A stretch of 64,000 nt of DNA from Ruditapes philippinarum (taxonomy: Eukaryota). The DNA lies in contig NW_026856091.1 in assembly GCF_026571515.1 (NCBI RefSeq), forward strand, positions 1 through 64,000, read 5' to 3'. This document shows positions 30,183-53,517 of the stretch, one piece after another. The position numbers and the translations under genes were made by a program. The notes under the pieces were generated by a model. The model saw nothing but the letters and a program-made list of their open reading frames with translations, was not told the origin of the DNA and ran no database searches. Numbering within the stretch: position 1 is the first letter of the stretch; each line of letters opens with the position of its first letter.

Positions 30183-32894
30183 TCACTTTTTTGTAGAAAA
30201 ATCAAAAGATGAATGAAAATATACAAATATATCATCAGGTTTGATATGAAATAGTTTATCTTGATCTTTAACAACATACTGTTTAGCATCATTTCCCTTA
30301 CTTCCAATAAATGGTGAGTCTTGTTCATCATCATTTAACTCTATCTCGCCATCATCTGTTATACAACATTTCAATACTTTCACATTTACAGTATGAGGAA
30401 TACTAGGAAGACTATCAACAAACTTTTGCCATGTTGTCAAAGTCATTGTCACATAATAAAGCTCAATGTCCTTTAAACTGTTCATCTGTAAAGGTGACTG
30501 TATTATATTGTTAGTTAACCTAAAATCATATAACCGAAGCATCCTGAGATTGTGTACTTTGACTAGACTTTCTCCTATCATTGTATGATATAAATGAGAT
30601 TTAAGGTCCCGGTCTGCATGTAATTCAAGCTCTTTTAATTTGTTAGATTTTCTGATGATTTCAAATATTTTCTTATAATTACATCTTTTCAAATGTGTAT
30701 ATCTAAATATTTCAAGGTTTGTAGTATCAACATCTTTCACACTAACAGCATCACACAAATAAAGGTACTTAAGACATCTTGATAAATTTACATCATGCTG
30801 TTTGAAACAATCACACCTAACTTCATGAAGATGTATTTGTTCAAGTTTACTGATTCCCTCAAGAAAATTACAAAATGTAGTAGTATCGTCATGACTCATT
30901 TTTATATAACTCATTCTTATTGCTACAAGATTTTTCATACGTGGTAGGTTTTTGACAACTGTTCTGCATACTGGAAAATAGGCAAGGGACAGAGATAGCG
31001 ATATTAATGTTAAAGTATTTTTTTTAATTATCTCTGAAGTGCATTTGTTAATCTCATCAATCATCTTTGTATAACTCTGTATAGTATTATCATTTTGTGT
31101 GCTTGAAAACAATTGGCGTTGAATTGCAGATTGGAATGTCATTTCAAGTTTTTCAAGATGTTGAAACATTGGCAAATATTTTATAAATATAACATTGTCT
31201 GTGTTGCTGTAATTTACACGAATAGACAGAACAGAGTCAGTAGCAATTTGTTTCAGATCAATTCTTGAATAAACATTATCACAGAACTGATTCAATTCAT
31301 CAATGATCAAATCTCCTAAATAAAATGCAGGAGAAGATGAGTCCTTACATTCTTCAATTAACGCAAACACAAGCTGATGAATATCAGTAAATAATATATT
31401 AATGTTTCTACTTTCAGAATCTGTATAAAATAAATCAGTTTGTGTATTTACAGTTCTCCTGTATTCCTTAACACGAGAGTCTTTTGACACAGTATCAAAT
31501 ATGAATTTTGAGACATGTGTTGCTAATTTGGGTTCTAGGCCACATAGCATAATCATGACACTTGACTGCTCTAAAATGTCATTTACTCTTATACATTTCA
31601 TACATTTCTGAAAAACGCCTTCAATAATCTCATAACAACTTTTTGCTAATTCATCATTTCCTGTACTGTTTAATGAAGCAATTTCTGTATTAAAATTGAT
31701 ACAAATATTCACTGCAGCCAGAAATTCTTGCATTGATTTGTGAATAAAAGAGAATAATGAGCTTGATGGTTCTGATACAGTAAAATTGGGACGTTCATCT
31801 TCTGTCATTATTCCAAGTTTCAAGCAGTTTTTCCTAACTTCATCTGAGATGTCTAGTTTATCCAACAAACAAATGTCAAATGCCAAGGATTTGTTCTTTG
31901 GACAATTAAACAGTGTCTTATAAGCCAATTGTGACATATCATAAATGAAATGGCGGTAAAATTGTAATTTGGTTTTATCTGCTAAATATTTAGGAAGATT
32001 AACTTCCTTTTTACCCTTGTCTCGACCATTTGTTTGTGCAGTTTTCATATCATTCCATGCAAAGAAAAGTTCCAACATGCCCGTGTAGATGGCAGCTCTT
32101 GAGGTTTTATCAAGTTTATCATCATACCATAGACAAATCAATTGTTGAAGTATAATTGGTACCTGTTTTAAACTTCCAAGGGATTTTTCTCTAAGCTTTG
32201 CCCTACAGTCTCTTGCGTCTTTATTAGCATGTTTTCTATTATTTAATTGTGAGACTGTCCTATTTACCATTTCCCTTTCACATTTAAAATCAAACCCTTT
32301 TAGTTTCAGTGATTGTTTAATATCAACACCAATTGATCGCAAAGTAAAAAATTTCCATGGACGTGAAGTAGTTACTATTGTGTACTCCTTAAATTTGCTA
32401 TGATCTGGGACATTTTCACAGGACCATTCATCTATGCCATCAAGCAAAATCATAACTCTAGAGGATTCCTTTTCAAGAAGTGTGCTTAAAATGTCCATTT
32501 GATAGCGTTTTTGAAGCATTATATCAATGTCAATGTCCTGATACTGTCTAAGAGGGATGTAAAATACAAATTCAAATTTCTTCATCACCTTTACACCCAT
32601 GAATTTTTGTTCATATGTTTTACTATCATAGTCAAGTTCCTCCTTGGTATAATTCTTGCCTTCAATTTCGTTTGTTTTTGTACCACACAATCCAGCCTGT
32701 TCCCTTTGAATTTGAAAACTAAATTCATCCCACATTTTTATCATTTCTTCATTCAATCCTCCATGTTTTTCTTTTGCACCTCCATTTTCTACATTGTCGC
32801 CCCCATGTTTCTCACTTTCACTTCTATGCTTCTCACGGCCAGCTCCATGTTCTTCATTGTCACCTTCATTTTCTTTATTGTTACGCCTATGTTT
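30183..32894 (-). CDS. NLR-like gene exon 5, distal frame: end of the repeat insert, NACHT C-terminal half, HD1/WHD/HD2 and degenerate LRRs
   Basis: Frame is open from 32894 to TGA at 30183. Motifs: FEFVFYIPLR, Walker B VMILLDGIDE (32427-32456), sensor-1 IVTTSRPW, VPIILQQLICLW, WHD motif FSFIHKSMQEFLAA, LRR-like HLEKLEM, KLEQIHL, KLKELEL, NLRMLRL, SLKDIEL. Confidence 0.93.
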   Translation of the reverse strand, partial: KHRRNNKENEGDNEEHGAGREKHRSESEKHGGDNVENGGAKEKHGGLNEEMIKMWDEFSFQIQREQAGLCGTKTNEIEGKNYTKEELDYDSKTYEQKFMGVKVMKKFEFVFYIPLRQYQDIDIDIMLQKRYQMDILSTLLEKESSRVMILLDGIDEWSCENVPDHSKFKEYTIVTTSRPWKFFTLRSIGVDIKQSLKLKGFDFKCEREMVNRTVSQLNNRKHANKDARDCRAKLREKSLGSLKQVPIILQQLICLWYDDKLDKTSRAAIYTGMLELFFAWNDMKTAQTNGRDKGKKEVNLPKYLADKTKLQFYRHFIYDMSQLAYKTLFNCPKNKSLAFDICLLDKLDISDEVRKNCLKLGIMTEDERPNFTVSEPSSSLFSFIHKSMQEFLAAVNICINFNTEIASLNSTGNDELAKSCYEIIEGVFQKCMKCIRVNDILEQSSVMIMLCGLEPKLATHVSKFIFDTVSKDSRVKEYRRTVNTQTDLFYTDSESRNINILFTDIHQLVFALIEECKDSSSPAFYLGDLIIDELNQFCDNVYSRIDLKQIATDSVLSIRVNYSNTDNVIFIKYLPMFQHLEKLEMTFQSAIQRQLFSSTQNDNTIQSYTKMIDEINKCTSEIIKKNTLTLISLSLSLAYFPVCRTVVKNLPRMKNLVAIRMSYIKMSHDDTTTFCNFLEGISKLEQIHLHEVRCDCFKQHDVNLSRCLKYLYLCDAVSVKDVDTTNLEIFRYTHLKRCNYKKIFEIIRKSNKLKELELHADRDLKSHLYHTMIGESLVKVHNLRMLRLYDFRLTNNIIQSPLQMNSLKDIELYYVTMTLTTWQKFVDSLPSIPHTVNVKVLKCCITDDGEIELNDDEQDSPFIGSKGNDAKQYVVKDQDKLFHIKPDDIFVYFHSSFDFSTKK

Positions 32895-35540
32895 TTAAAC
32901 ATCATTCTACTGCTTCCGCAGTGTCAACCCCCATCTTTTCTTCCCCCAAAATGTTTCCAAACAGCTCTTTGTGTCTTCTTTGCAAACATGTTTTTCATTG
33001 GCATTTTCCGATGTTAAACATCAGTCACTAGTCCTGTCACTGTCACACCCAGTTTTTCCCTTTGTCAACAACATTTTTCCAACAGTCAATTTCATGTTTC
33101 TCACTGTCATCTCCATGTTTTTCATTGTCATGTCCATGTTTGTCATTGTCACCTCCATGTCCTTCATTTTCACCTCCATAATCATCATTCTCACATCCAT
33201 GTTTCTCACTAACACCTCCATGTTCTTCACTGTTACCATCATGTCCTTCACTGTAACCTTCTTGTTCTTCCTTGTCACCTCCATGTTTTTCATTGTCACG
33301 TCCATGTTTCCCACTGTCAACTCCATGTTTTTCATTGTCACCTCCATGTTCTATGCTGTCACCTCCATGTTTTTCATTTTTACCTACTTGTTCTTCCTTG
33401 TCATCGCCATGTTTATTACCTTCATGTCCTTTATTGTCACCACCATGTTCTTCATTGGCACCCCCATGTTTTACACTGTCCCAAAAATGCTTTCCACTGT
33501 CAAAATTATGTTCTTTATTGTCACTTCTATGTTTCTCACTGTCATCTCCATGTTCTTCACTGTCACCATCAGGTTTTTCAGTGTTAATATCATGTCCTTC
33601 ACTGTAACCTTCTTGTTCTTCCTTGCCACTGCGATGTTTTTCAGTGTCAACTCCATGTTTGTCATTGTCACGTCCATGTTTCTCACTGTCACCTCCATTT
33701 TCTTCATTGTCACCTCCACGTTCTTCACTGTTAACTTCATGTTCGTAATTGTCACCTCCATTTCGTTCAGTGTCACATACATGCTTCTCACTGTCACATC
33801 CATGTTCTTCAATGTCACATCCATGTTCTTCATTGCGACTTACTTGTTCTTCCTTGTCACCGCGATGTTTCTCAATGTCACCTACATGTTCTTCATTGTC
33901 ACGTCCATGTTTCTCACTGTCACCTCCATGTTCTTTACTGTCACCTCCATGTTCTTCCTTGTCAACTCCATGTTCTTCACTGTCATGTAATTGTCCTTCC
34001 TTGTCACCGTCATGTTTCACATTTTCACCTCCATGTTCTTCACTGTCAGCTCCAGGTTTTACACTGTCATCTTTATGTTCTTCATTCTCACCTCTTTGTT
34101 TTTTATTCTCACCTCTATGTTCTTTACTGTCACCTTCATTTTCTTCACTGTCACCTACTTGTTCTTTCTTGTCACCGCTAGGTTTCTCAGCGCCACCGTC
34201 ATGTTCTTCATTTTCACTTCCATGTTCTGCATCGTCACCTCCATATTCTTCACTATCACTTCCTTTTTTTTCACTGTCACCTCCGAGTTCTTCACTGCCA
34301 CTCCCATGTTCTTCATTGCCACGTCCATGTTTTTCATTGTCACCTTCATGTCCTTCATTCTCACCAGCATGTTCATCATTGTCACCTACTTGTACTTCCT
34401 TGTCAGGTCCATGTTTCTCACTGTCACCTCCATGTTCTTCATTTTCAGGTCCATGTTCTTCATTGTCACGTCCATGTTTCTCACTGTCATCTCCATGTTT
34501 TTCACTGTCATCTCCATGTTTCTCACTGTCACCTCCATGTTCTTCATTTTCAGGTCCATGTTCTTCATTGTCACGTCCATGTTCTACATTGTCACCCTTA
34601 TGTGTTTCATTGTCACCTCTAAGTGCTTTATTGTCACCTCCATTATTGTATTTGTCACTTCCTTGTTCCTTAGTTACCTCTTCATTTACAACGTCAATTA
34701 CATGTTCTTTATGTTTGTCATTGCCTTCTTCATTTTCATTGCCACATCCATCCTTATTATTATTGCCACCTCCATCATTTTTGTCTTTGTTTTCTTTATT
34801 TTCAAAGTCTCCATCATGTTCTACATTTACCTTTTCATTTACAATGTCACCTTTATGTTTTTCATTCTTACCCTCATGTTTTTCAGTGTCACCTGCATGT
34901 TCTTCATTGTCACTTACTTGTTCTTCCTTGTCTGCGCCATGTTTCTCACTGTCACGTCCATGTTCTGCATTGTCAACTCCATGTTCTTCATTGTCACCTC
35001 CATTACCTTCATTGTCACATACTTGTTCTTCCATGTCACTGCGATGTTTCTCAATGTCACTTCCATGTTCTTCATTGTAACTTCCATGTTCTTCATTGTC
35101 ACGTCCATGTTCTTCATTGTCACCCCCATGTTCTTCAGTCTCACCAGCATGTTTTTCACTGTCACCTACTTGTTCTTCTTTGTCACGTTCATGTTTCTCA
35201 CTGTCACCTCCATGTTCTTCATTTTTTCCTCCAAGCTCTTCATTTTCACGTCCATGCTCTTCATTGTCACCTTTATGTTTTTCATTGTCACCTCCATGTG
35301 TTTCATTGTCGCCTCCATGTTCCTCAGTTACATCTTCATTTACAACGTTAATTACATGTTCTTTATGTTTTTCATTGCCTAGTTCATTTGCATTGCCACC
35401 TCCATTTTTTTCATTATTGCCACCTCCATTTTTTTCTTTGCTTTCTTTATTTTCAAAGTCTCCATAATGTTCCTCATTTACCTTTTCATTTGCAATGTCA
35501 CCTTTATGTTTTTTATTACCATCCTCATTTTCAATTTCAT
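32760..35540 (-). repeat. Coding 21-bp tandem repeat encoding (GGDNEEH/GxDSEKH)n, about 120-130 units
   Basis: The plus-strand unit TGTCACCTCCATGTTCTTCAT recurs throughout and translates to acidic Gly/His heptads in the NLR frame. Confidence 0.95.
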
Positions 35541-35849
35541 CTTTAAGTTTCTCACTGTGTGCCAAACACCAACAGTTGACTAGATATTTACAAAAACTAG
35601 TTTTTCCTGACCCTGCATCGCCAACAAGATATACAGATTTTTGGGGGATTCCGTTCTTTGTGAAGATTTCTGACATTGTTTTAACCTCCACCTCCTCTGT
35701 CTCACCCTTTTCTCCTTCTTTCTCGCTCGTTATTGTGGGTCTAATATAAATCTCACTAAAGCTACATTTTCCATGGTGTGGTTGTACAGGTGTTGTAGGA
35801 ACTTGCAGCAGGGTTTTGTGATACTGATCCATAAGCTTTTTCCTCATTG
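33043..35849 (-). CDS. NLR-like gene exon 5, proximal frame: pre-NACHT helix, Walker A and the repeat insert
   Basis: Acceptor TTAATTACAG at 35850-35851, phase 1 (G|CA = Ala). FSEIYIRP pre-NACHT motif, Walker A GDAGSGKT (35599-35622), then heptad repeats. The frame ends at TGA 33043-33045 in a garbled patch. Confidence 0.9.
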
Positions 35850-36634
35850 CTGTAATTAAGATACTTAATATTAAATTAAACTGACACAGAAAAAAAGTAA
35901 ATAATACAAAAAATTAGTATAGACCCGGATAAATTATCTCAAGCCTTAAACATACAATGTAAAAAAGAAAGACAACCGTTTATTCCATGTTCTCTTAACA
36001 TCAACAAAGTTCAATGTACTGCACAAAACACGAAAAATCAGTCAGATACTTTTTAAATATAATTCTATTTTTCTTTTCTTTAAATACTTAACATTACTTG
36101 TCAATCTATTGCGTTATTCTTTGTTTAAAATAATAATACACATATTAACAAAAGAAGCATTGCATTCAATGAACGCAACCCATTATTAAACACAATTACA
36201 AAGCTTATCCCTCGGTTTCGCTTCAGACGTGTTATGGAACTGATTCATGTTTATTGGTCACAAATCAAAACGAGTCAATCTAAATATAAATGTATTAACC
36301 GGAAGTTTACGAAAATATGTTCTTTAATCAGCGAACATGAAAAGTGTCCGTATATGTACGCTAACCAATCGCCGAAGACGATAAATATATAGATTATGCA
36401 GAAATGCATCAATGAATCACGTATTATGCAAACCTTACCTTACGTATTGTACATAGCCTGATGACGTATTACACATTTATTTAAGATGAATTGAAACTAA
36501 AAGTCATTTTGTATGAAGACACATTTAAAATCCAACCGCGTTTCGGGCTTACACTCGCGCTTTGGATTTTTGCAGGCCCAAATGCGATTTTACCTGCCTC
36601 TGGTATCGAGCGTGTGCCTTCTTTGCAGATTGCA

Positions 36635-39600
36635 GAATATAACATACCTGTTTAAGCCATTACATATATTGTATAAAATTCCTTATTAATGTTTTTCATA
36701 TCATATAAAACATATCTAATTTTGTTTTTTGATATTCTATATTACATACCTAATTTAGCCTTTCTTTATTTGAATAAAACACCTTAATTGGCATTTTAAT
36801 ATTTTATATAACATTACCGACTTAGTCTTTTCATATTTTATATATTAATATATTTGATTTAGCCTTTTAACATTTATATAACGAACATGATTAAGGCTTT
36901 TCATACTCTACAAAACAAACCTAATAAACGCATTTCATATTTTATATACTATGCCTGATTTTCATATTCTCCATGACATAATGATTTACAATTAGTCTTT
37001 TCACATTCAATAAATCATAGCCTATTCATAACCATTTAACATACCTGATTCAGTCGTTCTTTATTTTATTTAACATATTCTATATAACATGCATGACTTA
37101 GGCTTTTCATATTCTTTCATTATTTCACTGGATAAGCCTATTTATTTTTTAAAAAATGTACCTGACTTGGCTTTTTCATATTCTATATAGCAAACATGAT
37201 TAAGCGTTTTCATGTTCTTTATATTACACCTGATTTAGCCTTTTCATATTGTATATAACATGCATGACTTTGACTTTTCATATTCTTTTTTTACGTAAAT
37301 GATTACGCCTAATTACTTTCTGTAAAATATACCTGATATAGCCATCTTATACTTTATATAAATTACATGATTTAACCTTTTCAAATTCTATATAACATTC
37401 CTGATTGAGTCTTTTTTTTTTCTTTTTTAAGATGCCTGACTTAGGATTTTCATATTCTACATAACTTACCAGATTTAGCTTTTTCAAATTCTATATACTA
37501 TACATGATTTCGTCTTTTCATATATGATATAAATTACCAGATTTAGCAATTTCATGTTCTATAAAACATCCTGATTTAGCCATTTTCTACAAACCTGATT
37601 GTGGCTATTTATTTCTTTGAAAAAAACCTGAGTTAGCCATTTCAAATTCTATATATTAACATATCAAATTTAGCCTTTTCATATTCTATATAACATACGT
37701 GATAAAGCCTTTTCAAAATTTTTATAACATACCTGATTTGGCTTTTTCGTTTATTATGTAACTTGCCTAATTTATCCTTTTCATATGATATATTGTCACA
37801 AAGTAAACCATTTCATAAATGCTCAGAAGTGCTTTAAGTACTTTGATTTTTACATAATTCGTAAGTGCTCAGAAGTGCTCTCAGTACTTTGATTTTTGTA
37901 GTATTCTATTCATGCCGAACCTCAGTTTTATACTAAATACAATGTACATTATTGTATCATCTTTTTGTAAAATTCAGAGTTATCGAGTGAAATTATTTAT
38001 TTCAGTATTTTGATCTATTGCTTAAATTTCTTGGTATCATTTCAAGTATGTTGACATATTTTTCATAAAATTCGGTCCAGTAATAAGAAAGTTAGATTTT
38101 TGTGATAAAGTGTAAATTTATTTATGGTCTATTAATTTGATATTACAGGCCTGTATATTTTGTTATACATGCGTTCTGGAATGCAAAAAATCGTAAAAGT
38201 TATGTTTCACGCTTTCTACTCGGGGGAACTATGCATAATGTATATATTGAACGATTTTAAATCTTCTTTGGGTCTCACATTTAGACGTGTAAAGACGCAC
38301 AAGGTCATTATGACAGACCAATTTATTTTTGTTGTGTAAATTTGAAGCTTGCGCAAGGTAAGTTTTTCTTTTCTTCTTGTTTTATTTAGTAAATTTTTGT
38401 TATTTCAGAAGATCGTTATTCAGTTAATTTTTCCTTACATAATCGTTTTGTATTTTTTTTTTTTTTTTTTTGCATTTTTGACAGTATTTGTTTGTTCTCC
38501 AAACTTTCGTCTTCTGTAGAGTTAGGACTCTAGTGTTTCATTCATTACTTGAATATTGGTAATCTGTTTATTATCATTGATAGTTGTTGTTATGTATGGA
38601 AGGCCGTTAACGCATTATTTTATCATACATATATTTCATTTATATTTACTAAACTAAGTTTTCATGTTCTTGTTTAATACAGTTAGTATTTTTATAATTG
38701 AGTCTGCTGCAGATGTTTTTTATATAATTCTTATTTTTTTAAGTAATTTTCGTATCACTTCACATCATCATTATTTTTTTTTTGTACGAAATAATATGGA
38801 TTCGATTCAAGGATGGATTTTGTCGATGTTTAGGTGGCACCCGGTCTTGCTTCATGTTTTATATCTTACATCGTGCTACGATGTAATATCAACGTTGAAT
38901 TTACTTTACCGATGTGTATGGCGTTCCATAAGGAACATCATTTTTTTAGAAACTTTGTTTATAGAAATCCGACAAAGGTCCGGCTATGCCAAAGGGACAT
39001 ATTTATACCCTTATATTTGTGTACCATGGATATTTACCATGTTTTATATTTTGTAGCTTCTACTCGGAGGATTCACCTGCAATTTTGTATCACGCATGTG
39101 TTCAACATAGCGACGATAGTGGATATTGTGACGTAGCGACGCAGTCTTGGATCTACACTCTGTAGACAGTACAGAATCGATCTTTCTGCTTTGAATGGGC
39201 CACATCTGGAGATTGTGACGTAGAGACCCCACATCCACAGTCTTGGATCTACACTCTGTAGAATCAATCTTCTGCTTTGGATGGGTCACATCTCGAGCTT
39301 CAGTGTATTTTTTTTAGTTAAGTCACCGGGACAAAGTGCTATTCGACAGGACACGGAACTTTAATTTATTTTGTTTTTCTCTTTTCATTCATTGCTTATC
39401 ATTTAATTTCATTTATAAATATTCATTTATTTTTGTAAATATATATTTAAATAGTGTGTACTGAGTTGTGCTTTGTTTTTTTATGGTAGTTGTGATCAGC
39501 CTGTGTTCCATCGAAGTCCATAATGTGACATATATATCATACCTGATTTAGAATTTTCATATATTATATAACACACCTGACTGAGGCTTCCATAATCTAC

Positions 39601-40612
39601 TTTAAATGTCTAATTTAGCATTTCATTTTCTGTATGACATACCGGATTTCACATATTTTACTTTCTATATAACATACCTGATTAAGCCTTTTCATATTCG
39701 GTATAAATATACCTGATTTAGCATTTTATATTATATGTGGCATACCTAATTTAGCTTTTTCATATATTATATTACAGACCTGTTTAAGCCTTTCATAGTT
39801 TCTATAATATACCTTATTTAGACTTTTCATATTCTTTTTAAAATACCTGATTTAGCATTTTCCTACTTGATATAATGACCATAGTTAGCCTGTTATACCT
39901 TATTAGGTTTTTTATTATGGTATAAATAACACACCTGATTATTCCTTTTCATATTCTATATACCATACCTATCTTTATCTTTCTAAATTTTATATAAAAT
40001 AACTGATAATGACTTTTCATATTCTACATAACATGCATTACTTAGACTTTTCATATTATTTCATTACTTCACTGATTTAGGCTATCTGTTTTCTACAAAT
40101 AAACCTGACTTGGCTTTTTCATATTCCATATAGCATACATGATAAAGCGTTTTCATGTTCTATATAATACATCTGATTTAGCCTTTTCATATATATATTA
40201 TATAACATACCTTATGAAGCCTTTTCAAATTTTATATAACAAACCTGATTTAACCTTTTCATATATATATTATATAACATACCTGATGAAGCCTTTTCAA
40301 ATTTTATATAACAAACCTGATTTAACCTTTTTTATATATTATATAACATATTCTTTTAAAATATCTGATTTAGCCTTTTTATATTCTGTATACATATACC
40401 GTATTATTAAGCCTTTTACATATATTATATCAACTACATTCTATAAAACATACCTGATTTAGACTTTTCATATTTTGTAAAACATACCTGATTTAGCCTT
40501 TTCATATTATATACAACAAACCTGATTTAGATTTTTCATATTCTATATAACATACCTGATTTAGCCGTCTCATATTCTATATATTAACATACCTAATTTA
40601 GCCTTTTCATAT
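36635..40612. repeat. 34-bp minisatellite (ACATACCTGATTTAGCCTTTTCATATTCTATATA)n in NLR intron 4, interrupted at 37794-39530
   Basis: Period of 34 measured (40483, 40517, 40551); about 60 degenerate units. The last unit overlaps exon 4. Confidence 0.92.
37794..39530. mobile_element. Candidate solo LTR (~1.74 kb)
   Basis: TGTCACA...TGTGACA inverted termini and a 5-bp TATAT duplication (37789-37793, 39531-39535). Interrupts the 34-bp array; internal short direct repeats at ~39120-39290. Confidence 0.7.
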
Positions 40613-40662
40613 CTTAACTGTTTTTGTTGAGGAGAATCGTTTTCCTTGAGTCTTTTTATCTC
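40593..40662 (-). CDS. NLR-like gene exon 4 (EIKRLKENDSPQQKQLRYEKAKL + 1 nt)
   Basis: Acceptor TTATGTTGTAG, donor TAG|GTATGT, 70 nt, phase 0 to 1. It exactly bridges phase-0 exon 3 and phase-1 exon 5, giving YEKAKL-A-MRKKLMDQY. Confidence 0.8.
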
Positions 40663-40950: not shown

Positions 40951-43900
40951 AACAAGAGGTTCATAATAGCTCTAATATCGCTCCCCATGACAAGGTACAA
41001 GTTATTTGTAAACTATAAATGAAAGCTGATTTTACACTGATATCACAAAGTTCATATGCATTAGTATTTGGATCTGGAATAATGCATGCGTTTAATATTG
41101 ACTAGTTGCTTTTGGAAAAAAGTGCTATTAGATGTCACTGTTAGCTATACAAAATAAATGGGTTTTTTTTTGGGGGGGGGGGGTTGTTTGTTTTTTATTT
41201 ATACATTTGAGGAAAATCAATAACCCACCCGGGGCAAGGCCAATTTTGACACCCGGCTTTTTGTCAACAAACTTGAAAGACACTCATTAGAAGATGCTTT
41301 ATGCCAAATATCTAAGTTCTAGCCATTTGGCTTTTAAGGAAAATGTTTCTGGTTTTCTTTTTTATATTATTAAAAATTATTAAGAAANNNNNNNNNNNNN
41401 NNNNNNNNNNNNNNNNNNNNNNNNNNNNNNNNNNNNNNNNNNNNNNNNNNNNNNNNNNNNNNNNNNNNNNNNNNNNNNNNNNNNNNNNNNNNNNNNNNNN
41501 NNNNNNNNNNNNNNNNNNNNNNNNNNNNNNNNNNNNNNNNNNNNGGAAAATTAAAAGGAAAATCAATGACCCCCTGGGACGTAGCAAATTTTTACTCAAC
41601 AGCTTTTATTTGAACAAACTTTAAACACACCCAACACTAGAAGATTTTTTATAATATATATCGAAGCTCTAGGTCTTTAGGTATTTTCAAAAAAAGACTT
41701 TTTCTATTTTTTACTATATGAATTTGAAAAATTTGACCTCACAGCTTTTATGTGAACAAACTAAGTAGAGACCGACTAGAAGATTTTTTATGCTTAATAT
41801 CTAAGCTGTAAGTTTTGGGATGTTTTGAAAATATTATTTAAGTGTTTTCATTGCGTTGTCATGACAAGCAGAGTAGTGCATGGAATTCAATTATGTGAAC
41901 AATTTTCAAAAGTGACCGCCCAAGGAACAGTTCCGTATAGTTGCGATGAAATTTGCTTTGCGATTTATGAGGACATGTCGTTTAAAGTTAAACTTTATGG
42001 ACAGAAGGACGCTGGATGAAAAGCGATCACAGAATCTCACCCTGTCACTTTGAGCTAAAACGAGATTGCAGAATGTTGTTCCACCGCTTTCCCACAACAC
42101 TTCAAAGTTCAAATTAACATCTAAAATGTCCATATTGTCAAATTGTATAGCTGTTCATCAAAGAACAAGAAAGTATGTCATCTGTCAATCTCTATGTCAG
42201 CTGCATGCATGATATTAATATTCATTTTTTATCCAAGGCTGTGCACATTGTCCAAATTTCATTGCAGTACATAAACAGACAAGGTCAAAATTTGGAGTTA
42301 AGGGTTTAAGTAAAACCATCTGGATACAGGTCCATAAGACAATGTTTCATCTCAAATATCAACGCTGTAACTTTATCGTATTTAAAAGATTTAATTTCTG
42401 TTTGTACTTATGTACATAACAAAAATCAATGGCCTACGGATCGAGGCCAATTTTGATCACAGGGCATTACTTTGAACAATATTGGTCCACTTCACATGTT
42501 TTTCATGTAAAATATCCAACCTTTAGCCCTTGTCAGTTCAGAGATGAAGATTTTTTAAGTTTTTAACATATACATATCAGGAAAACCTATGCCCCTCGAG
42601 GCGGGGTCAATTTTGACACATAGGGGCAAAATTTGAACAACTTTCGTAAAGGACAAATAGATGATATTTTATAGCAAATACCAATGCTCTAAGCCTTGTA
42701 CCTTCAGACAAGAATATGTATTAAGTTTTTACTATGTACATATGAGGAGAACCTATGGCTCTCTAAGGAGGGGATAATGTTGACACAAGAGGCAAAATTT
42801 AAACAACTTTCAATAGTTAGAAAAGTAATAATCAAGGTCACGATGACCTAAATATCGCTCACCTGATTACCGAGGCTGAATATTAAAATTGTAAGCAATC
42901 AATGAAATAGTGCAAATCTTTCATTTTTTATTCTATTTTTTCCATATATGCTCTTATATGTATTGTTACCATTTTTACCTCAGATTACCCTTATTCAAAC
43001 CTAAACTTGATATCATACCATCAACTTTTCTGACCAATATTCAGGATATTTTGGCTAAAAGAGTAACCTCTTGAGTGATAGCAAAGCTTTTCCATTTTTT
43101 GTCTGTGTAAACTAGATTTGGACCATGGATGACCAATGTTCACTGCTTAACTAAAAGAACATCACAACAAACTTTGTGATACATTTTCATGATATTAGGG
43201 ATGAAAATATTACCGTTATATCTTCATTTTTTTTAAAGATTTTACTTTGTCAACAATTTTGACCCCAGGACTTATATTTGCATAATCTTAGAAGAGGTCT
43301 TCTGCACAATGTTTCATGCCAAACAACTTAGTTTTAGTATTTCTTAAATCACAGAAGATGAAAATTTAAAACCTTTTTTTACAACGTCTTTAAAAGGGAA
43401 AATCAATGAAACCTAGAGGGGGACCATTTTGCCCCCAAGTTTAAATTTTAAAAATATGGGGTAAGATCTACTACCAAATTTTTATGCCAAATACTTATCT
43501 CTATTTTTGTAAATTTCCCGGGAAGATTTTGTTTTTTTAATTTTCATTTTATGCAGAGAAGGCGTATCAATGACCCCTGGGGCGAGGTCAATATTGACCC
43601 AAAACCTTTAATTTGAAACGTTCTTGTAGAGTTTATGAGACAATGATATTGCTATACACAAACTATTTAGGCCTTGCAATTTAAAAGGAGAATCATTTTT
43701 AGTTTTTACATACCCATATGAGGAAAATCAATGACCCCCTAGGGCCAGGCCAATTCTGAGACCTAGTCCTATAATTTGAACATGAGGTGACGCTACACAC
43801 AAGATCTTTAAGCTCTAGACATGCACTTTCAGATATATTGTTTAAATGATGACGGACGAACGGACGCACTGGCACCAACTGTACTGACGGACGATGGACG

Positions 43901-43960
43901 CCGGACGAATTGTGATCAAAAAAGCTCACCTTGAGCACTTTGTGTTCAGATGAGCTAATA
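40951..43960 (+). mobile_element. Cluster of HINE/CvA-like elements with tandem ~170-190-bp core repeats
   Basis: Start AACAAGAGG...ATATCGCTC; repeated GGCCAATTTTGACCC...TTTGAACAAACT...CCAAATATC..GCTCTAG monomers; GACG microsatellite; ends ...GAGCTAAAA (42060) and AGCTCACCTTGAGCAC...GAGCTAA (43960). Confidence 0.75.
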
Positions 43961-43980
43961 ACCCAAGAATCATATCTGTA

Positions 43981-44755
43981 CGAGGTTTGTTCGCAGCCCG
44001 ATGTACTTCTAGCCACTTCACTGACATTTACACACGATACGTCGATACTGATTTCTTATTGTTGATTACTAACCGAGTTACACGTGGTTTTACACAGATT
44101 AAGTAACATTAAACACACTGTGATCCGTAGTTGGATGTGCCAGTTAGAACAAATGGAGAAAGTTCAGAGCTGTCATTAAGTACCTCTGTAAACAAGGTAT
44201 GTCCCAAAAATTCAAGAAAGTGCCATCAGCATGGAAGATGACGGCTTCAATTTTTGGGATAATCAATTGGATAATCATGATTGACTAGCTTGAGCAAGGT
44301 CGTACCATAAACGTTACGTAATATTCAGGCGCATTGAAATGTGTACATTAAGAAATCCCGCCTAAAAAGAGGGGCAATCTGACTGAAGGCGTTCTGCTCC
44401 TGCTCGACAATGTGCCAGCTGACACATCCAAAATTGTGATGGCCGGCGGCTTTGAAATTCTCCCCCCCCCCATATTCACCGGACTTTGTCCAACTTTTAC
44501 TTCTACCTATTTCCGAATCTTCAAATCAAGCTTCGTGGTAGACTTTTTGGAAGCAATGAAGGTGTCATGGAGGCAGTCAATGATTTCTTTGAGGACCAAA
44601 ATAGAGAGTTCTATTTTGAAGGATTAAACAAGTTGGAGCCTAGGTGGGAAAAGTGCATTGATGAGGAGGGCGATTATGTTGAAAAGTAATACCATTATTA
44701 AGGTTCTCTGACTACCGGAAGTACATCGGGCCAAGAATATTTTGATCTTTCCTCG
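43981..44755 (+). mobile_element. Internally deleted mariner (Tc1/mariner) element
   Basis: TA|CGAGG...CCTCG|TA ends. Transposase remnants RAVIKYL, LEQGRTIN, VLLLLDNVPADT, PPYSPD and FYLFPNL...RWEKCIDEEGDYVEK*. Confidence 0.92.
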
Positions 44756-47271
44756 TAAAGTTTAGTCAAAATCTTCCTTAAGTAAAGATGGTTGACAAAC
44801 AATGGTGACAAACACAATACAAGAAGCGCCGCAATTCAACAGAACCATGTGATCAACGACCAAGTATTGATGTGACAGGAATCAATAGGTCAAAGGGTAC
44901 TGAGTTATTGAGTAGAGCTGAATAATTTAGCATATGTAAGTGACATTGACCTTGCTATCACATCCGTAAGTTGCAGTCCTACCTTCCCGCCCACCTTCCT
45001 TCGTTAACAAAAAATGTCATCACAAAAAATGAGTTGAAAACACAAAAGTCGTAACATTATAGAAGCATGATCAGTAAAGTCAAATTCCTATTTAAGTCAA
45101 AGTTATAAACATGATCCTGAGGCATGGCTCTTTTTGAACCACTATTATGATTTTCATAACTCAATGCTGCATACGTAATATGTAACATTTCAGGTTTGGC
45201 CATTTAGTTACAAGGGGTTTACATGTATTACTCATGATTATGATTTTCATAACTCAGGCAATGCTGCATAATAAATATGTAACACTTCAGGTTGGGCCAT
45301 TTATTTCCATGAGACAAGATTTATGTTACTTTTGGAGATGGCAACAAGAGCATCATTCCTGTAAAGGTTGTTCAAAATATTTTTTTGTAGTTTGAGCCGA
45401 CATGTTCTTACATGGAATTGTCAACAGTTAACCTCAGTTATAGATCAAAGTTGAATTTAAATTATACAACAAGCTAGAATTTCACAAGTGTAGTTTAGTT
45501 CCAGAATGAATCAGAACTGTGCATTATCATTAAGTACAATATTATTTTATTTAAAGCAGACTATAAATCAAGCTTAAGGTCAAGGTTCCCATTTATGATT
45601 ATTTCTTTATATTATCTGATAATGAAAATAAATTGACCGTTACAGTGAATTTTCTATTGTTACTCAAGCACAATGCAGAGTGTACATTTGTGCTGCTGAA
45701 AAGCACTCTATGATACGTATATGTACAATTTCAATATTTTATGAATACATTTAATATCATGCGTGCACCTTAACTACATTTGCCGTTGAATTCGGAATTT
45801 AAACATCACTTGTTAAAGTAATACTTGCGTTAAAACTGATGTCGACAAAATGTCTCGAAATTCGATCAATAAGAAAATTTGGCACAAGGAAAGCGAAACA
45901 CTGTCTGAAACGTACCAAAGGATACTGGCTATTAAAAGAAATGTTCAGTAAGCAATAACCTAGTTTTTGATAAGCATTATTGATTGCTTGAGAAAGAGTA
46001 GTAAAGAAATACAGGTTTTGTTCCAGTGTTTTGGGAACATATCCCATAATTGATCCTTGATGTTGATTACGTCAATCACACGGTAAATGGAAAGATTGCG
46101 GGAAATGGAGGGAGAGGCAGAAGAAGGAAGATATCAAGTATGTTGGTGACGTGTATTGACTTGAGGTTGGAGAAACACGTTTGACTCTGCAAACATTATC
46201 ATCGATGTTCGATACCGGACGGTGCAGTCCATTTAAACTGTGGACTTTAAAATGCGAAAGCTAAGTGCATTCTATTATCTTTTAAACTTTTTAAAGATAT
46301 TTTACTATTTTGCGAATTTAACCGTTTACTCATTTTAACTTACTTAAACGTCAATTGTCAATAAATGGGTAATTGGCAATAAAGTACAGAAGGAATGTTT
46401 AATATTCATTTATAGAAACTTTTAATCAAGGACAAGTTTTTTGCTTCAAATTATTAAAAAAGTGTTTTTGATATTGGATTCTTTTCAGAAAAAACAACAC
46501 ACACACACAAACGTGTTTGTTAAACAAAATACCTCGGCTCAGATTTTTGTCAGTAACTATATTCAAAAAATGTTTACACATTTACTCAGTTACAGACATA
46601 AAATTTGCCAAAAAATTGTAAACACATTTATTTAACTTGACACAGTCATGGCGTTTTGTATTTGTGAAGAAGATTATTGGCAAGTCATTGCTGTGACTTG
46701 TGATGAAATTGAAAAATATTCAACTTTATCAAATATATTTGAATTTAAGACTTAAACTCGGACCCAGTGACTCTACTAAATTCCCTCCAAACTTAAAGGA
46801 TCACCTCAGGTATGTTCCTTGTAAATATGAGACATTGGTAAGATTACAAAGGCTGTATAAGAATGTGTAAAAAAAATTATAGTGTTAGCATAAGTGCAAT
46901 TGACCTTGACTCCCAGCACTGGACCATCCAATGTCTGTTCCTACGAAATATGAAAACATCAGTCTGTAAATGCAATGTGTAAAATATATTTCTGTCACCA
47001 TTGACCTTGACCCACGGACCTCTAGTTTAATCCAAAGGATCAATTTTATGTTCCTACCAAATATAAAAGACACATCTCAATAGAGTAAGGTTATACACCT
47101 TTAAGAGTGCAAAAAACTTTTTTCGACATTGTGACCTTGACCTTGAACTAAATAAACCCTTATTAAACCCAAAGCAAGAAGACTTCCCTTGACATGTTTG
47201 TATCAAACATGAAATACATTTACTTACAAACAATGTATAAATAAAGGCTGTATGAGCAAAAATGTTTAAAA

Positions 47272-48764
47272 GAATTACAGTCAAATCGGCCCTAAGTCAG
47301 ATCGGCCCCAAGTCAGATCGGCCACAAAATAGTCAAATCGGCCCCAAGTGAAATCGGCCTCAAGTCAGATCGGCCCCATTTTTTTTCTTAATTCATTATT
47401 CATTTTCTTATTTTTTAAATGTTGATAAAAAACAATCGTGTGGATGGGAATACCAAATGACAAACAATGGATTACATAGAAAACAAGAACAAAACATATA
47501 ATAATCAGTCGAATTTATTATATTCATTTGAAGTCATTTTTATCAAGAGTTTAATATATATGTTTTTTTATAATTATACTGAGACTTTTTTAAATTTTGT
47601 TAATTATGATTTTATACACAGAGATGGAATCAAGGTAAGTAGAATTTTTAATTAAATGTGATTACTTCAGCTTTAAAGACACCACAGTCTAAAACGCGGA
47701 CGTCTTAAGTTGTTGGTGATATCATTTCTTTTATAGTTCTTTTATAGTTTTTTTTAATTTAAAGAAATTAAATTTAGATTGATTAAATATATAATTTATC
47801 CAGATGTGTTGGACACGTGTAACTAATAAACAGCTAATTTAAAGTGTGAACAACATGCTACCTGATTAAACGTCTCACTCTTTAATTGAATGGATATCTC
47901 TAAAAATAAGTATTTTTCGGACAAAATAATCATAACAGAACAGAACATATACTTTATTTCTGACTGGGGCATAATACCCATCATCTCAACATACATATAC
48001 ATGTATATTTATTATAATGCATGCACCAAGAAAGCATGATATAATAAATTCAAGGAGTTATATTCACATAATTAAATACCGATTTTTTTAAAGGGACAGT
48101 TTGAGAATTTACGTTTCGTATTCGCATTCGTTTATATATGATGGTCATCAATTAAATATCAAATTATACATTCATATATGATATCTATATTGTCTGCGTG
48201 TTCCTATAGCCACTCATGTGCGACAAATCAAATTAAGTTTGAACATCACATAATTTTGTACCGTCACGTTTAATCAGGTAGCACGTTAATCACACTTAAT
48301 TATCGTTAATTGCATCAATCATTCGTTAATCCAGTAGCATTGCATCTCTATTTATTATTATCAATAAACTATAATTTAAATTAAAACTACTTTTTTTTTA
48401 AAAAATGCATTTAGAAAATTAGTAAAATACATGTTTGACTGTTGCGTGTGTGTGTATTTGCGTTTATTTATACTCGCCACCGGTTGCCCATATGGGCGAG
48501 TCCTCCAGAAGAGTATTAGTCATTTTATTTTTTGGAGGATAGTGCAATTATAGATACAGAAAGATGCCCCAATTCCAGAAGCTTCTCCTGGTTCTTTAGC
48601 GTGCCAAGTGTTTAAGCACCCATACACGGGACCTCGATTTAAAGTCTCATCCGAAAGACTGATTAGTAATTTAAGTTGGCTAGCCCGGGAATCGAACCCA
48701 CAATGTCGAGATTACAAGTCTCGCGCTCTAACCGATTGAGCTATGCGGGCTGGCTGACTGTTGC

Positions 48765-48798
<34 letters not shown>

Positions 48799-49380
48799 TT
48801 ATACATAACTGATTAAATTCATTTCACTCAAAATTGTTTGTTAAAAAAGCCGAATTCAATGCATGATTATTTGAGACAATGACTAAATTGATTAAAGACA
48901 CGTGATAATTGTTTGTTTTTCACATAATTATTTATCTTCAAAACGTAGACCGACCTTTAAATGTTCAGATATTTAATTGTAATTAAATGTAGATATCAAT
49001 CAACAACCAAAGCACACCTGCATAATTACATTAATAACAATTATCACTAGCATCAAAACTGTCTCAATTTTGTAATGAATTATTTTTAATTGGTACATTT
49101 ATGTTAAAGTACAATTCTCAGTTAATAACCTTGTAATTTTTGGCGTATAACATTATTTTAACCAAAATTGGATTTTTCATAAAAATAACTTTAGGGCCGA
49201 TTTGACTAGTTGTGAGGCCTATTCGACTAGTTTTGGGCCGATTTGACTAGTTTTGGGGCCGATTTGACTTTTTAAAATTGTTGTGTGGCCGATTTGACTA
49301 ATCTTGAGGCCGAATTGACTAATTTTGGGGCCGATCTGACTTGGGGCCGATCTGACTTGTGGCCGATTTGACTAGTTTGC
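47272..49380. mobile_element. MITE-like element with tandem subterminal AGTCA(A/G)ATCGGCCCCA repeats in inverted orientation
   Basis: Arrays at 47279-47378 and 49194-49373 are inverted relative to each other. GTTTAAAA duplication at 47264-47271 and 49381-49388. Inserted in an older repeat bearing TGACCTTGACC motifs. Confidence 0.8.
48446..48754 (-). mobile_element. Full-length Meta-domain SINE with a tRNA-Thr(TGT)-like head
   Basis: The head at 48679-48754 has A box TAGCTCAATCGG, anticodon arm CGAGA-CTTGTAA-TCTCG and B box GGTTCGATTCC. Core GTCTTTCGGATGAGACTTTAAATCGAGGTCCCGTGT...GCACGCTAAAGAACC; (CA)n tail; perfect 10-bp TSD TGACTGTTGC (48436-48445, 48755-48764). Confidence 0.9.
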
Positions 49381-50535
49381 GTTTAAAAATATAATTTTTT
49401 AACAACAGTGACCTTGACCTTGGCCCTAGAGACCCCTTACTCAACCACCAATTAAAGGGCGATTAAAGGAATTACCTTCCAAATATGACAGATATTATTA
49501 ATAACAGGCAATGATGGACAGTCGGACGGATGGACAGACGGTTCAACAACTATATGCCTAGGGCACAAAAAGTTTTAAATCATATATTGTGATACCTTGA
49601 GAGTGAGTACTAGATGTACAAGAATAATATTCCAAAACGAATATATATTTTGCTTTGCATGCTCTTATTGTATCAGCTTAAGACTAGAAATGATTATGTA
49701 ATAATACTATGTTGACAAAAATATAAGCTGATACCCTGTGGACTTATGCAGATTAGCAGAGGGTGGCATACTGTTAGTTCAGTATTTCACAACTTTCAAA
49801 ACAAACAAAACAAGGATGATAGGTGGCACTGTTGAACATAATTATGATAATCAGTGCTTTATAAGCTGATTATATCTAAAGATTTCTTTTTATTTCTTTA
49901 TAGTTATGTAATCCCACCTCAGTTTCTACTCTTGCGTGATCTAGTTTCCTGTCAGTTTGAATTTAATTTGGCAACATGTTTTTTATGCATAAAATTAAAC
50001 AATTTTAATTCTTGCATTACTTTAATTAATTTTTGATGAATAAGTATATGAAATTTAAACAGATATGATATAATAAAGTTATTTTATAACACTGGTATAG
50101 ATTGTTCACCATAAAAATGTGATAATTAGGCTTTGCGAATGCAAGCATGTTTTAAAAATAAGCCGCCATGTTCTTACAGTCATAACATACTTAAAAACAT
50201 TCAAAATAGTAGGTCTAAAAATCAGATGGTTTCGCCGGCGGAACATTCATAGGCATACTTCGAAAATAAAAATAGTGCCATTTTTGTAACATGCAGGGGA
50301 TATATTATGTGTTTTTATGTAAATATTCAATGAGTAATATATGTTTTAAGTAATAAATCAAGTCCGGTTGTAACAGAAAACAATGGGCATCATGAGTTCA
50401 CAAAGCTTTCTAGACTGAATGTGTGCCTTACCAAGCTTATAATAATGTTTCTCATACAAACATTAGTTCTATGTTTGTATGGAATACATTAACTGAAATA
50501 TCAACTAGAAACAAAGGATAGAAAAAACATTTTAC

Positions 50536-50703
50536 CTCTTTTAGTTTGGACATCTGTGTTTCAAGTTTATTTGTGAGCACCTCAAATTCCTCTTTGGTGG
50601 GAGAATTTTCAGCCAATTTTTGAACTTTCGCCAATTCCTCCTTGATTTGCCTCAGGATTTCTTTAAAGTCTTCAGTGGTAACAATGAAATCTTTCTTCTT
50701 CAG
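50536..50703 (-). CDS. NLR-like gene exon 3, coiled-coil linker (LKKKDFIVTTEDFKEILRQIKEELAKVQ...MSKLKE)
   Basis: Acceptor TTATTTTTCATCAG, donor GAG|GTAAAA, 168 nt, phase 0 to 0; heptad-like charged/hydrophobic pattern. Confidence 0.85.
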
Positions 50704-52106
50704 CTGATGAAAAATAACAATTTTGTTACATTTTCAGAGAAGTATGTGTATCTGTGTGTTTTTTTTATATTTATATATTCTATACAACATATTTTAAATA
50801 AGGACAAAACTTTATTTTAAACTAATAATTTTATCTTAGAATAACCAATAAACAAATTAATAAAAAATAAATCAACAATATAATATTTTACACAATTGAA
50901 ATAATAAACAATTGAAGGTATTTAAATATAATTAGAGGCCGAATGACGAACGCAACACATGTGTTCAATCCCATGCGCGTGTCAAACTGTTCAGCGCCTC
51001 GTTAAATTTTCGAGATCATATCCACTCCTTTGCAATGACGTTTTGATTGTATTTGAGAGGTATGTCTGCAGATGCGTGTACATTTCCGATTTTCTTAACT
51101 AATTGGATACACACACTTTTTTTACTCGCTAAATAGAAATTATTTACTTTTTCAGAGTAATCGAATATCAATTTTGGTGACCGATATTTGGACATGCGAT
51201 CGAGCACTGGGTTAACCGGTTACTCATAGCCATCCCTAAAGATGATCTCAATTGCTCTATTATTTTATCTATAATACTTTTCTGAGGGCTTCTAAAATTT
51301 ACTTTTATAAGAGGGTATGTGGTATAGGTATCTAGCTATCGGCTTCTTATTTTCTTACTTCTGTTGATACATATATTTCAGTGTAACATGGAGTTCGAAT
51401 TTTAGGAGGTTCCGGAATTCATATAATACTTCTCTGTATCTTAGTTTCACACTAAATTCAAGGGTTTTACATGCTTGAAAGGTTGAGGTTCTAATAGGGG
51501 TCAAGATATATGGTCACTGCTAATTGGAAGATAAAAACATTTTGCAAAATCGTTTGGACTTCATAGTTTACAAGTACGAGAATTCAGAGGTATGAATTAT
51601 AAAGGTCTCAGCCTTGGTACTTTTGAAGATACAAATGTTTTGTAGGTTTAATCACCTCAGGTATAATAAACATTTACACCCTTTTACAATTTCAAGATCT
51701 TAGCAGACACATTTTAATTGATATTATCTAAAACTTTAACACACAATCGTTTGGAATTCAGAATTTTTGAAGTCCGGAATTTCAAAGGTATAAATCATAA
51801 AGAATTTCCAGACCCTGAATATTGTTCGGATTTCAAGAGTTTACGGGTATTAGAAATTTCGGACTTCGTATGTTACACTGTGCTTAGATGCTTTTTGTAA
51901 ATAATCAAATATGTTTTAGGTACATATGTATTTTATGCGACTTTATCAATTCACTTAAGGAAACTATTTTTTAATTTGACTACTATTTACCATTGTTAGC
52001 TATGTTACCTATATAATTTATTTTGTCCTTAATTTTGTTGTTTGTTATCTTAACAATCTTAAATTAACTGCATACAGATTTCAAACTTCAGAATATTTAC
52101 ACTTAC

Positions 52107-52265
52107 ATCTTGCAGTTTCGTCACCGCTATCTGAGTATCTGATCGTTGTAATAGCTCCTTACCATCTTGTAGAACTGCAATCATATCCTCAATATACATA
52201 TTTGCCTCACTTTCTTCTAATTCCATGCTGCTTGAGTGAAAAATAGTATTTCTATACTGACGCAC
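52107..52265 (-). CDS. NLR-like gene exon 2, HEPN motif exon (VRQYRNTIFHSSSMELEE...TKLQD)
   Basis: Acceptor CTCTATTCAATAG, donor GAT|GTAAGT, 159 nt, phase 0 to 0. RNTIFH at 52236-52253. Confidence 0.9.
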
Positions 52266-52935
52266 CTATTGAATAGAGAACACAGATTCAATATTTCTAT
52301 GCATAAATATTCAGTGCTCTGCAATCATAATTATTTTGTTGAAAATTGTTTAGGTAATTACCTACATATAAGATGTAATCATGAGTTATTTTTCATGTCT
52401 TATTTTTGTCATTCAATTTGAGAAAAAGACAAATTGTAAAATTTAATTTTGGGAAAAATATGCCAGCGTTCAAGATGTTAAAATGCTTTATGAACTCAAT
52501 AAATCTTATTGAAACTGCTCAGAAATTAAAAGATATCCGAAACGTCCAAAATGCTATTGCACACCAAATACAAAATACCTTTTCCTAGGAAATAACCGAT
52601 CTCAGGATCGGGAATTTGTTTTAGATTAGGAAAGAAAGAACACAATTTAGATTGAGAATAAGGCTTATATTTGGACCCATGAGATATGGGGAAAAGAACA
52701 TGCATACAAACAGTAAATATTAACCACAATTCTTGTGAATTGTTACAATAAAATGTTGCATCAAAAAAGATTGGTGATTTTTTTATACATTTGTTGTGAA
52801 TCATTAGAGTGTATATTACTTCATTACCTTAATAGTTAAATTTTCATTTTCAATTTTACTTTAATGCTGAATAAACAGCATTAACATTAAAATAGAGCTT
52901 ATAAAAGATAAATAAATTGTGTTTTAATGATTTAC

Positions 52936-53517
52936 CTTTGACAAAAGATTGTTTGTTCCTGTGACATTGCATCCAATGTGGCTATGAAAATACTGGTTAT
53001 TTATCAATACATGTAATAACCCAGTAGAATCAGTTGCACTAGCAGATTGCCTGTCCTCGTACCCTGGAGCATTTATAAAACATTTACAAATGCTCCAAGG
53101 GTCTATCGTCCACTGTTGAGCATCAGTGTTTTTCCAGTAAGGTGAAGGTGGTGAGGATGCATGCTGCTGCACAATATAGTCATAGATTGCGCCACAAATG
53201 TTGTTCGGACATGCAATTTTGACCTTAAGAAAGCAACAGCTGCATTTTACTTGCCCAAAGGGACAAACCTTGTTTCTAGCATTCCCAAGATCTGGCTTAT
53301 GATCTGGCTTAAGAGTTTCTACTCGACAGCTGCCACACGTCACAGTTGATGGTAATGATTTTTTTGTAGACCTAATATTTTGTAAGATATCCTTATGTTG
53401 TTGATAAGCAATGTCATTACAAAATGGTGTGAGTCCTTCTTTTAAATATCTAAGTCCTAAACCAGCCTTTACCCACTGTCTGTATTTGTCATTCTCTAAC
53501 TGAAGTTGATGTGCCAT
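52936..53517 (-). CDS. NLR-like gene first coding exon, DUF4559/CXorf38-like N-terminal domain
   Basis: Acceptor at 53533-53534, ATG at 53517, 194 codons, donor AAG|GTAAAT. Motifs YRQWVKAGLGLRYLKEGLTPFC, Cys cluster, WKNTDAQQWTIDPWSICKCFI, DSTGLLHVLIN. The acceptor implies an upstream non-coding exon, which was not located. Confidence 0.9.

Follow-up and report, generated by a model that had tools for sequence, protein, structure and literature searches.

The window analysed here is a stretch of 64,000 nt from the Manila clam Ruditapes philippinarum (contig NW_026856091.1, positions 1 to 64,000), and the gene found at 30183-53517 of its minus strand is RefSeq LOC132745371, whose product is labelled only as "uncharacterized protein". 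The order of domains in this gene is HEPN-like, coiled coil, NACHT, winged helix and leucine-rich repeats (LRRs), and we lean towards regarding it as belonging to a very numerous family of clam NLR-type receptors with a CXorf38/DUF4559-type HEPN head. A HEPN-type module with an inserted Zn-binding Cys cluster would in LOC132745371, rather probably, occupy the place that belongs to the death-fold domain in other NLRs. A preliminary description of the same DNA had proposed this arrangement, from a DUF4559/CXorf38 head with a Cys cluster through a coiled coil to NACHT, the winged-helix domain and LRRs, and the order was borne out by motif and profile matches. The corresponding RefSeq protein, XP_060590261.1 (1786 aa), was recovered with 100% identity across exon 1 in an exhaustive protein search with that exon, and it maps onto the exons given below; analyses that needed joined exons were done with this public protein or with homologues.

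Moreover, the architecture is far from being a single case. In the 1.4-Gb genome of R. philippinarum, exon 1 gave 517 candidates and at least 150 copies with a score, 138 of these 150 without stops and 12 with them, and the exon with the P-loop gave 496 candidates. Among the matches listed, a hand tally from the tables of both exons yielded about 65 loci where a P-loop exon is preceded, on its own strand and at a distance of 3-27 kb, by an exon-1 copy. These exon pairs repeat the DUF4559-NACHT-LRR combination, as do RefSeq models from Ruditapes, Mercenaria, Dreissena and Mya. Homologue matches came from RefSeq or GenBank proteins of these same four genera, many of them of 1000-2400 aa, and short CXorf38-like proteins without NACHT also exist, such as the 387-aa XP_060574209.1.

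The HEPN-like head

The Pfam family DUF4559 (PF15112) matched exon 1 with an E value of 1.1e-8 and 35.1-35.3 bits (cut-off 27) over profile positions 69-141, and the match continued colinearly in exon 2 (profile positions 152-198). With the whole RefSeq protein XP_060590261.1, the score rose to 52.6 bits (E 6e-14), above the gathering score. The DUF4559/CXorf38-like N-terminus, already proposed from the bare letters, is in this way confirmed, above cut-off for exon 1 and colinearly on into exon 2. Two short motifs that had been pointed out were also located on the minus strand, to which all gene coordinates in this text refer: DSTGLL in exon 1 (53031-53014), which contains the conserved residues D163 and G166, and RNTIFH in exon 2 (52253-52236), an R-x4-H motif with Asn following the Arg (R199, N200 and H204).

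The conservation of the head was followed in an alignment of 105 homologues that extend past the RNTIFH motif. Six cysteines (C61, C64, C85, C92, C103 and C108) are kept in 98-100% of these homologues and are all present in this copy, accompanied by H73 (82%) and H119 (97%). Judged from its sequence, this Cys cluster inserted in the DUF4559 domain is Zn-ribbon-like, as corresponds to the CXorf38 family. Regarding the two short motifs, D163 is kept in 94% and G166 in 90% of the homologues, R199 in 82/105, N200 in 80/105 and H204 in 99/105. Overall, this copy carries the family residue at 33 out of the 33 columns conserved at 80% or more. A similar picture was obtained within the clam's own genome, where R-N-x3-H occurs in 66 of the 69 sampled copies of exon 2, down to 44% identity; conservation of the Arg and His across paralogues had been suggested as a check of the HEPN proposal, and it holds for RNxxxH in these 66 copies.

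Some natural departures from the motif deserve a separate mention. Three exon-2 paralogues have lost catalytic-type residues through changes of R to L, of R to I, and of R to Q together with H to N. These copies (L075, L079 and L085; G000:C12859:80538-80756, C3305:66230-66448 and C14509:76244-76456) could be natural inactive variants for comparison. In another subgroup of homologues (P0082, P0094, P0106, P0112 and P0130), G-K/R is found in place of R-N, and an Arg directly precedes the His (e.g., RDVGKLVRHS), a pattern in which the basic residue of the site may have been shifted or replaced by another one.

Profiles of other HEPN families gave a fainter signal. HEPN_Swt1 matched 11 of 31 family members, with a best E value of 3e-4 and all matches weak and under the gathering score, and HEPN_DZIP3 weakly matched two of the 31. 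The Pfam comparison advised in the preliminary description is therefore positive for DUF4559, above the gathering score, but weak for the two HEPN families. As for the predicted fold, the wider list of hits for a 387-aa model was filled by its coiled-coil tail, and for this reason a 247-aa homologue consisting of the domain only was folded with AlphaFold2. The resulting model (pLDDT 93.3, pTM 0.90) shows the motif RNAIMH (199-204) closing a helix at 191-203, with the His opening the loop that leads to the next helix (212-226). A motif at the end of a helix whose His opens the following loop is the placement described for HEPN domains by Anantharaman et al. (PMC3710099). Foldseek searches against the PDB gave no match at E < 0.6, either for the 387-aa model or for the domain-only model, and a sequence profile of the head compared with PDB sequences returned coiled-coil noise only. 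The AlphaFold and Foldseek check foreseen for this head was answered in part: the motif sits as in HEPN domains in a confident model, but no PDB structure was matched under that threshold. Fold searches are consistent with a HEPN fold and not decisive, and the HEPN reading of the head, which rests on R-N-x3-H conservation, the weak HEPN_Swt1 matches and the position of the motif in the model, is partly supported.

Gene structure and the NACHT-winged helix-LRR module

Splice sites and phases were checked directly on the sequence of the window. Exon 1 (53517-52936; 582 nt, 194 codons) begins with an ATG at 53517, is followed by the donor GTAAAT, and contains the first long helix of the HEPN-like domain, the Cys/His cluster from C61 to C108 and the sequence TDSTGLL. 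Exon 2 (52265-52107; 159 nt, 53 codons), between the acceptor ..AATAG and the donor GTAAGT, contributes the helix ending in R-N-T-I-F-H and then the next helix of the same domain. A predicted coiled-coil linker, which aligns with the linker of the homologues, is encoded by exon 3 (50703-50536; 168 nt, 56 codons; acceptor ..ATCAG, donor GTAAAA, phase 0). Exon 4 is a mini-exon of 70 nt (40662-40593; acceptor ..TTGTAG, donor GTATGT) that holds the end of the coiled coil, EIKRLKENDSPQQKQLRYEKAKL plus a G, and corresponds to residues 304-327 of the RefSeq protein. The large fifth exon starts at 35849, right behind the acceptor ..TTACAG (35851-35850), which was chosen because of the phase of the mini-exon and the conserved linker; a phase-0 acceptor ..GTGTCAG at ~35880 was considered as the start of this exon and rejected in its favour. 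Exon lengths of 582, 159, 168 and 70 nt set intron phases of 0, 0, 0 and 1, and the last base of the mini-exon with the first two bases of the large exon make up a split codon G|CA, for Ala. Five exons with canonical splice sites and these same phases had been described before, and both sites and phases stand, but the fifth exon is not a single open frame in this copy.

Intron 3 (~9.9 kb) includes an assembly gap, a run of N at 41388-41544 that falls in no exon; 726 nt separate it from the mini-exon downstream, and ~9 kb from exon 3 on the upstream side. Both sides of the gap (41258-41831) hold copies of a degenerate repeat whose units are 140-350 nt apart, and it is probably owing to these that the assembly broke at this point. 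No open frame extends into the gap, exon 3 connects in phase to the mini-exon with no contribution from it, and in the linker alignment the homologous proteins have no additional residues at the matching point.

The NLR module is read in the fifth exon from a set of ordered motifs. These are the Walker A GDAGSGKT (35622-35599; NACHT profile positions 3-30), NACHT strand 2 (32576-32547), the Walker B MILLDGIDEW (32453-32424), the sensor-1 motif TTSRPW (32378-32355), the winged-helix motif FIHKSMQEFLAA (31748-31713), which does not vary among the aligned paralogues and is a marker of the NLR winged helix, and a leucine-rich C-terminus with LRRs at ~31157-30450. A NACHT domain with Walker A, Walker B and sensor 1, a winged-helix His motif and C-terminal LRRs are the features by which we classify the protein as an NLR. 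The Pfam NACHT match is split by a repeat into profile positions 3-30 and 31-162, whose separate scores are 13.5 and 15.3 bits; taken together, the match reaches 26.5 bits (cut-off 26.7), and the paralogue proteins reach 29.7-34.5 bits. Pfam LRR matches were weak. When the NACHT-LRR frame was searched as a single sequence against the PDB there was no match, and a paralogue profile was needed. Built from the NACHT-LRR frame of this copy and five paralogue frames, that profile matched the LRR of NLRC4 (E 1.2e-5), the winged helix of NLRP1 (2e-5), the NACHT of NOD2 (0.009), ribonuclease inhibitor (0.018) and NLRP3. Motifs and matches to NLRC4, NLRP1 and NOD2 agree with the NACHT-winged helix-LRR module initially perceived in this exon.

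The repeat that divides the NACHT domain is an array of 21-nt units at 33093-35326 (~106 copies according to Tandem Repeats Finder, TRF), within a whole insert that spans ~32760-35540. It encodes ~900 aa of His/Gly heptads of acidic character (E 20%, G 17%, D 11%, K 10%, N 10%, H 9%), which are placed in the loop that connects the P-loop helix with strand 2. The distance from P-loop to Walker B is ~1000 aa in this copy, 239-479 aa in paralogues that bear the repeat and 82-96 aa in a sister subfamily without it. Since the inserts of the paralogues, whatever their length, are always in frame, the insert is taken as a translated feature of variable length, which is longest here.

Two further observations concern the introns. 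In intron 4, TRF and a view of the repeat register revealed two arrays of a 34-nt unit (36692-37793 and 39531-40612), in which the unit is copied from the mini-exon and comprises its 3′ end together with the GTATGT donor. There are 12 GGTATGT sites within 36600-40662, and the closest paralogue (L031 7034-7167) has just 3.9 of the 34-nt units. In intron 3, a tRNA-Thr(TGT)-like sequence is found at 48677-48751 of the minus strand (Rfam tRNA, 38.6 bits; also detected by ARAGORN), which may be either a tRNA gene or the tRNA-derived head of a short interspersed nuclear element (SINE).

The interrupted fifth exon and the RefSeq model

The first part of the large exon (33046-35849) is an open frame with the pre-NACHT linker, Walker A and ~830 aa of the acidic His/Gly heptads. 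A break follows at 32894-33045, which begins with a TGA (33045-33043) and where no frame is open in phase with either side until 32894. The second part (30183-32893) is an open frame of 903 codons that runs from the tail of the repeat through the LRRs to a stop at 30185-30183. An uninterrupted NACHT-LRR coding sequence is, in this regard, what this assembly copy fails to offer, owing to a stop and a change of frame. The paralogues hold the region from P-loop through LRR in a single open frame of 905-1304 aa, so that a single exon is the structure to be expected. The RefSeq model spans the break with a GT-AG intron of 160 nt (33046 to 32886).

A different view of the same region was provided by Logan contigs of four public runs from four studies, three of them of a type guessed as RNA and one DNA, which were compared with positions 30100-33150. 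Each of the four runs has a contig that is identical or nearly so to the window from 32541 or 32733 up to 32893, at which point 95 letters replace the 89 letters of the window (32894-32982). Beyond the replacement, the contigs match again at 32983-33122 or 32983-33150, apart from 9-11 substitutions and small indels that sum to -1. Altogether, the contigs are longer by 5 nt, which extends the spacer from 160 to 165 nt and brings the frames upstream and downstream into phase. A protein search with 32541-32894 found no homologues for the version of the broken stretch carried by other individuals. It is quite probable that the break at 33045-32894 corresponds to an assembly defect or a null haplotype and not to a fixed pseudogene; in the population, the gene most likely lacks this stop and frame change, which would belong only to the present assembly or to the haplotype that was sequenced.

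The same contigs bear on the other introns of the model. In none of the four runs did a contig joint match any of the three internal introns of RefSeq, and positions 30858-31731 are covered uninterruptedly. The RefSeq introns 31775-31374 and 31217-30504 were rejected, as the frame is open through both of them, the contigs run through 30858-31731 and the first of the two, in XP_060590261.1, removes the invariant winged-helix motif described above. For the annotation, this means that the current model drops a conserved winged helix through an unsupported intron and bridges a probable assembly or haplotype defect with another one of 160 nt.

An alternative explanation is that this copy is a pseudogene, a decaying member of a huge family with fast turnover whose NACHT exon broke within a runaway repeat, and whose RefSeq model is only held together by an invented intron of 160 nt. 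The TGA followed by a frame shift up to 32894 would be one sign of it. It would also agree with the longest repeat seen in the family, with an insert tail lacking the Ser/Asp-rich segment found in the paralogues, with the stops present in 12 of the 150 exon-1 copies elsewhere and with a bridging intron that no contig backs. Against decay of the gene, however, stand exons 1-4 and the 903-codon downstream frame, all of them intact, and the 33 conserved N-terminal positions, all of them kept. Moreover, it is precisely the broken stretch that appears in a different version in contigs of four independent runs, where a net 5 nt of extra length puts both parts in one frame, and we consider a pseudogene fairly doubtful.

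A candidate sensor-nuclease, its alternatives and its relatives

How a protein with this architecture might work can be proposed from established knowledge of NLRs and HEPN RNases. The LRRs would hold the NACHT domain off until a ligand is sensed, NTP-dependent oligomerisation of NACHT would then bring the HEPN heads together, and the HEPN dimers would switch on metal-independent cleavage of RNA from either the invader or the host. HEPN RNases build their active site across the dimer interface, and it is for this reason that dimerisation of the heads would switch on the cleavage. In its broadest form, the proposal is that heterodont clams encode hundreds of self-contained NLR ribonucleases, in which NACHT oligomerisation makes CXorf38-type HEPN dimers that cut RNA, and that one subfamily bears the length-changing acidic His/Gly repeat in its NACHT domain as a tuning or decoy module. 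We put this forward as a tentative idea, on the less likely side as a whole.

Several points weigh against LOC132745371 as a working receptor of this kind. The frame of the P-loop and the repeat stops at the TGA 33045-33043 and the frame from Walker B to the LRRs opens at 32894, which leaves 160 nt and one frame between them. As to the evidence for another version of this stretch, the 95 replacement letters are known by length alone and could contain stops, and for three of the Logan runs the label of RNA is merely a guess and concerns contigs rather than reads. The exon junctions of this copy are likewise those predicted from its genomic sequence, and its transcription is presumptive. An insert of ~900 aa may also impair the NTPase function of the NACHT domain. 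Finally, no RNase activity demonstrated for any protein of the CXorf38 family was found in the literature, where the only recent work located is computational.

A HEPN-like head that does not cut would offer a different outcome for the same architecture. In such a case, the head would be an adaptor for interaction or RNA binding, a stand-in for the death fold that recruits partners through homotypic contacts with the many stand-alone CXorf38-like proteins of the clam. Short proteins of this type without NACHT do exist, as the 387-aa XP_060574209.1, the fold match of the head is weak, many HEPN domains are non-catalytic (Table 1, PMC3710099), and a preprint models human CXorf38 as auto-inhibited. 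A mere scaffold, nonetheless, would not be expected to keep an Arg, an Asn, a His and an upstream Asp across paralogues down to 44% identity, as an active site would, and we regard the adaptor as an unlikely alternative to a candidate ribonuclease head.

It is very improbable that prediction has merged two genes, one for HEPN plus coiled coil (exons 1-4) and another for NACHT-LRR, as could be suspected from the length of introns 3 (with its gap) and 4 (~4.7 kb, with donor-like repeats), from a link between mini-exon and large exon that in this copy rests on sequence and not on junction reads, and from the existence of stand-alone CXorf38-like models, given that the phases 0,0,0,1 fit and the split codon is completed, that homologues from four bivalve genera have a conserved linker over the junction of mini-exon and large exon, that the sole upstream ATG context of the large exon is the M at 35847, directly behind the acceptor, that ~65 loci among the matches listed have the same order and strand, and that a contig of 5169 nt codes for a 1499-aa homologue comprising DUF4559, NACHT and LRR, hence without introns, as in a transcript.

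A single gene with a HEPN-type head and an NLR module has clear antecedents. In their 2013 analysis, Anantharaman, Makarova, Burroughs, Koonin and Aravind (PMC3710099) defined the CXorf38 family of HEPN domains within the Swt1-like group, with a Zn-ribbon insert and fusions to NACHT and DEATH, and listed it in vertebrates, Saccoglossus, Branchiostoma, Ciona and Nematostella. The clam genes resemble that family in a DUF4559 match above threshold, the Cys-rich insert, the R-N-x3-H motif (162-RNEIMH in the human protein) and the fusion to NACHT, whereas they differ in their occurrence in a heterodont bivalve, in their hundreds of copies, in the coiled coil between HEPN and NACHT and in the terminal LRRs. 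More recently, in a 2026 preprint of purely computational nature, human CXorf38 (162-RNEIMH, D134) was discussed as a hypothetical HEPN RNase, and the clam D163 of DSTGLL corresponds to the D134 flagged in that work.

Among bivalves, the genome paper of Corbicula fluminea (PMC8298618), from 2021, reported DUF4559 in 45 of 99 NACHT genes as a domain count only. It deals with the same pair of Pfam domains in a related clam, but without a HEPN reading, motif analysis or gene structure, and the expansion in the Manila clam, with its at least 150 scored exon-1 copies, looks larger. A HEPN-headed NACHT protein instead of one with a death fold, as envisaged in the preliminary description, is hence a real architecture but not a new one, since it was described computationally in 2013 (PMC3710099) and counted in Corbicula in 2021. 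The pearl oyster has been reported to possess over 50 NACHT proteins headed by a DZIP3-type HEPN domain (PMC9646362). These NLR-like proteins are also from a bivalve, also expanded, variable between haplotypes and provided with an N-terminal HEPN with Rx4H, often with Asn after the Arg; their head belongs, however, to another HEPN family, PF18738 and not PF15112, to which, of the 31 family members compared here, only the two with a weak HEPN_DZIP3 match come close.

The proposed logic, where oligomerisation driven by a ligand joins HEPN domains and leads to RNA cleavage, is the one known for RNase L, Ire1 (both with KEN-type HEPN) and bacterial STAND-HEPN proteins, and degradation of RNA linked to NACHT signalling was already suggested by analogy with RNase L and the bacterial proteins (PMC3710099). 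In the clam, where the RNA cleavage is putative, sensing would depend on NACHT-LRR, unlike the ankyrin, pseudokinase or bacterial sensor domains of those systems. What LOC132745371 adds to the CXorf38-type HEPN-NACHT proteins is a lineage and a copy number not previously described for them.

To our knowledge, an animal NLR with a nuclease of its own has yet to be demonstrated. Should the head of these receptors cut RNA upon NACHT oligomerisation, animal NLRs would be linked to the prokaryotic defence by STAND nucleases, and the clam NLR ribonucleases would be an animal counterpart of the bacterial STAND-HEPN proteins of abortive infection and of RNase L. A function would also be at hand for the uncharacterised human gene CXorf38, and for its study the clam family supplies many natural variants, including the three sampled copies in which the catalytic Arg or His is replaced.

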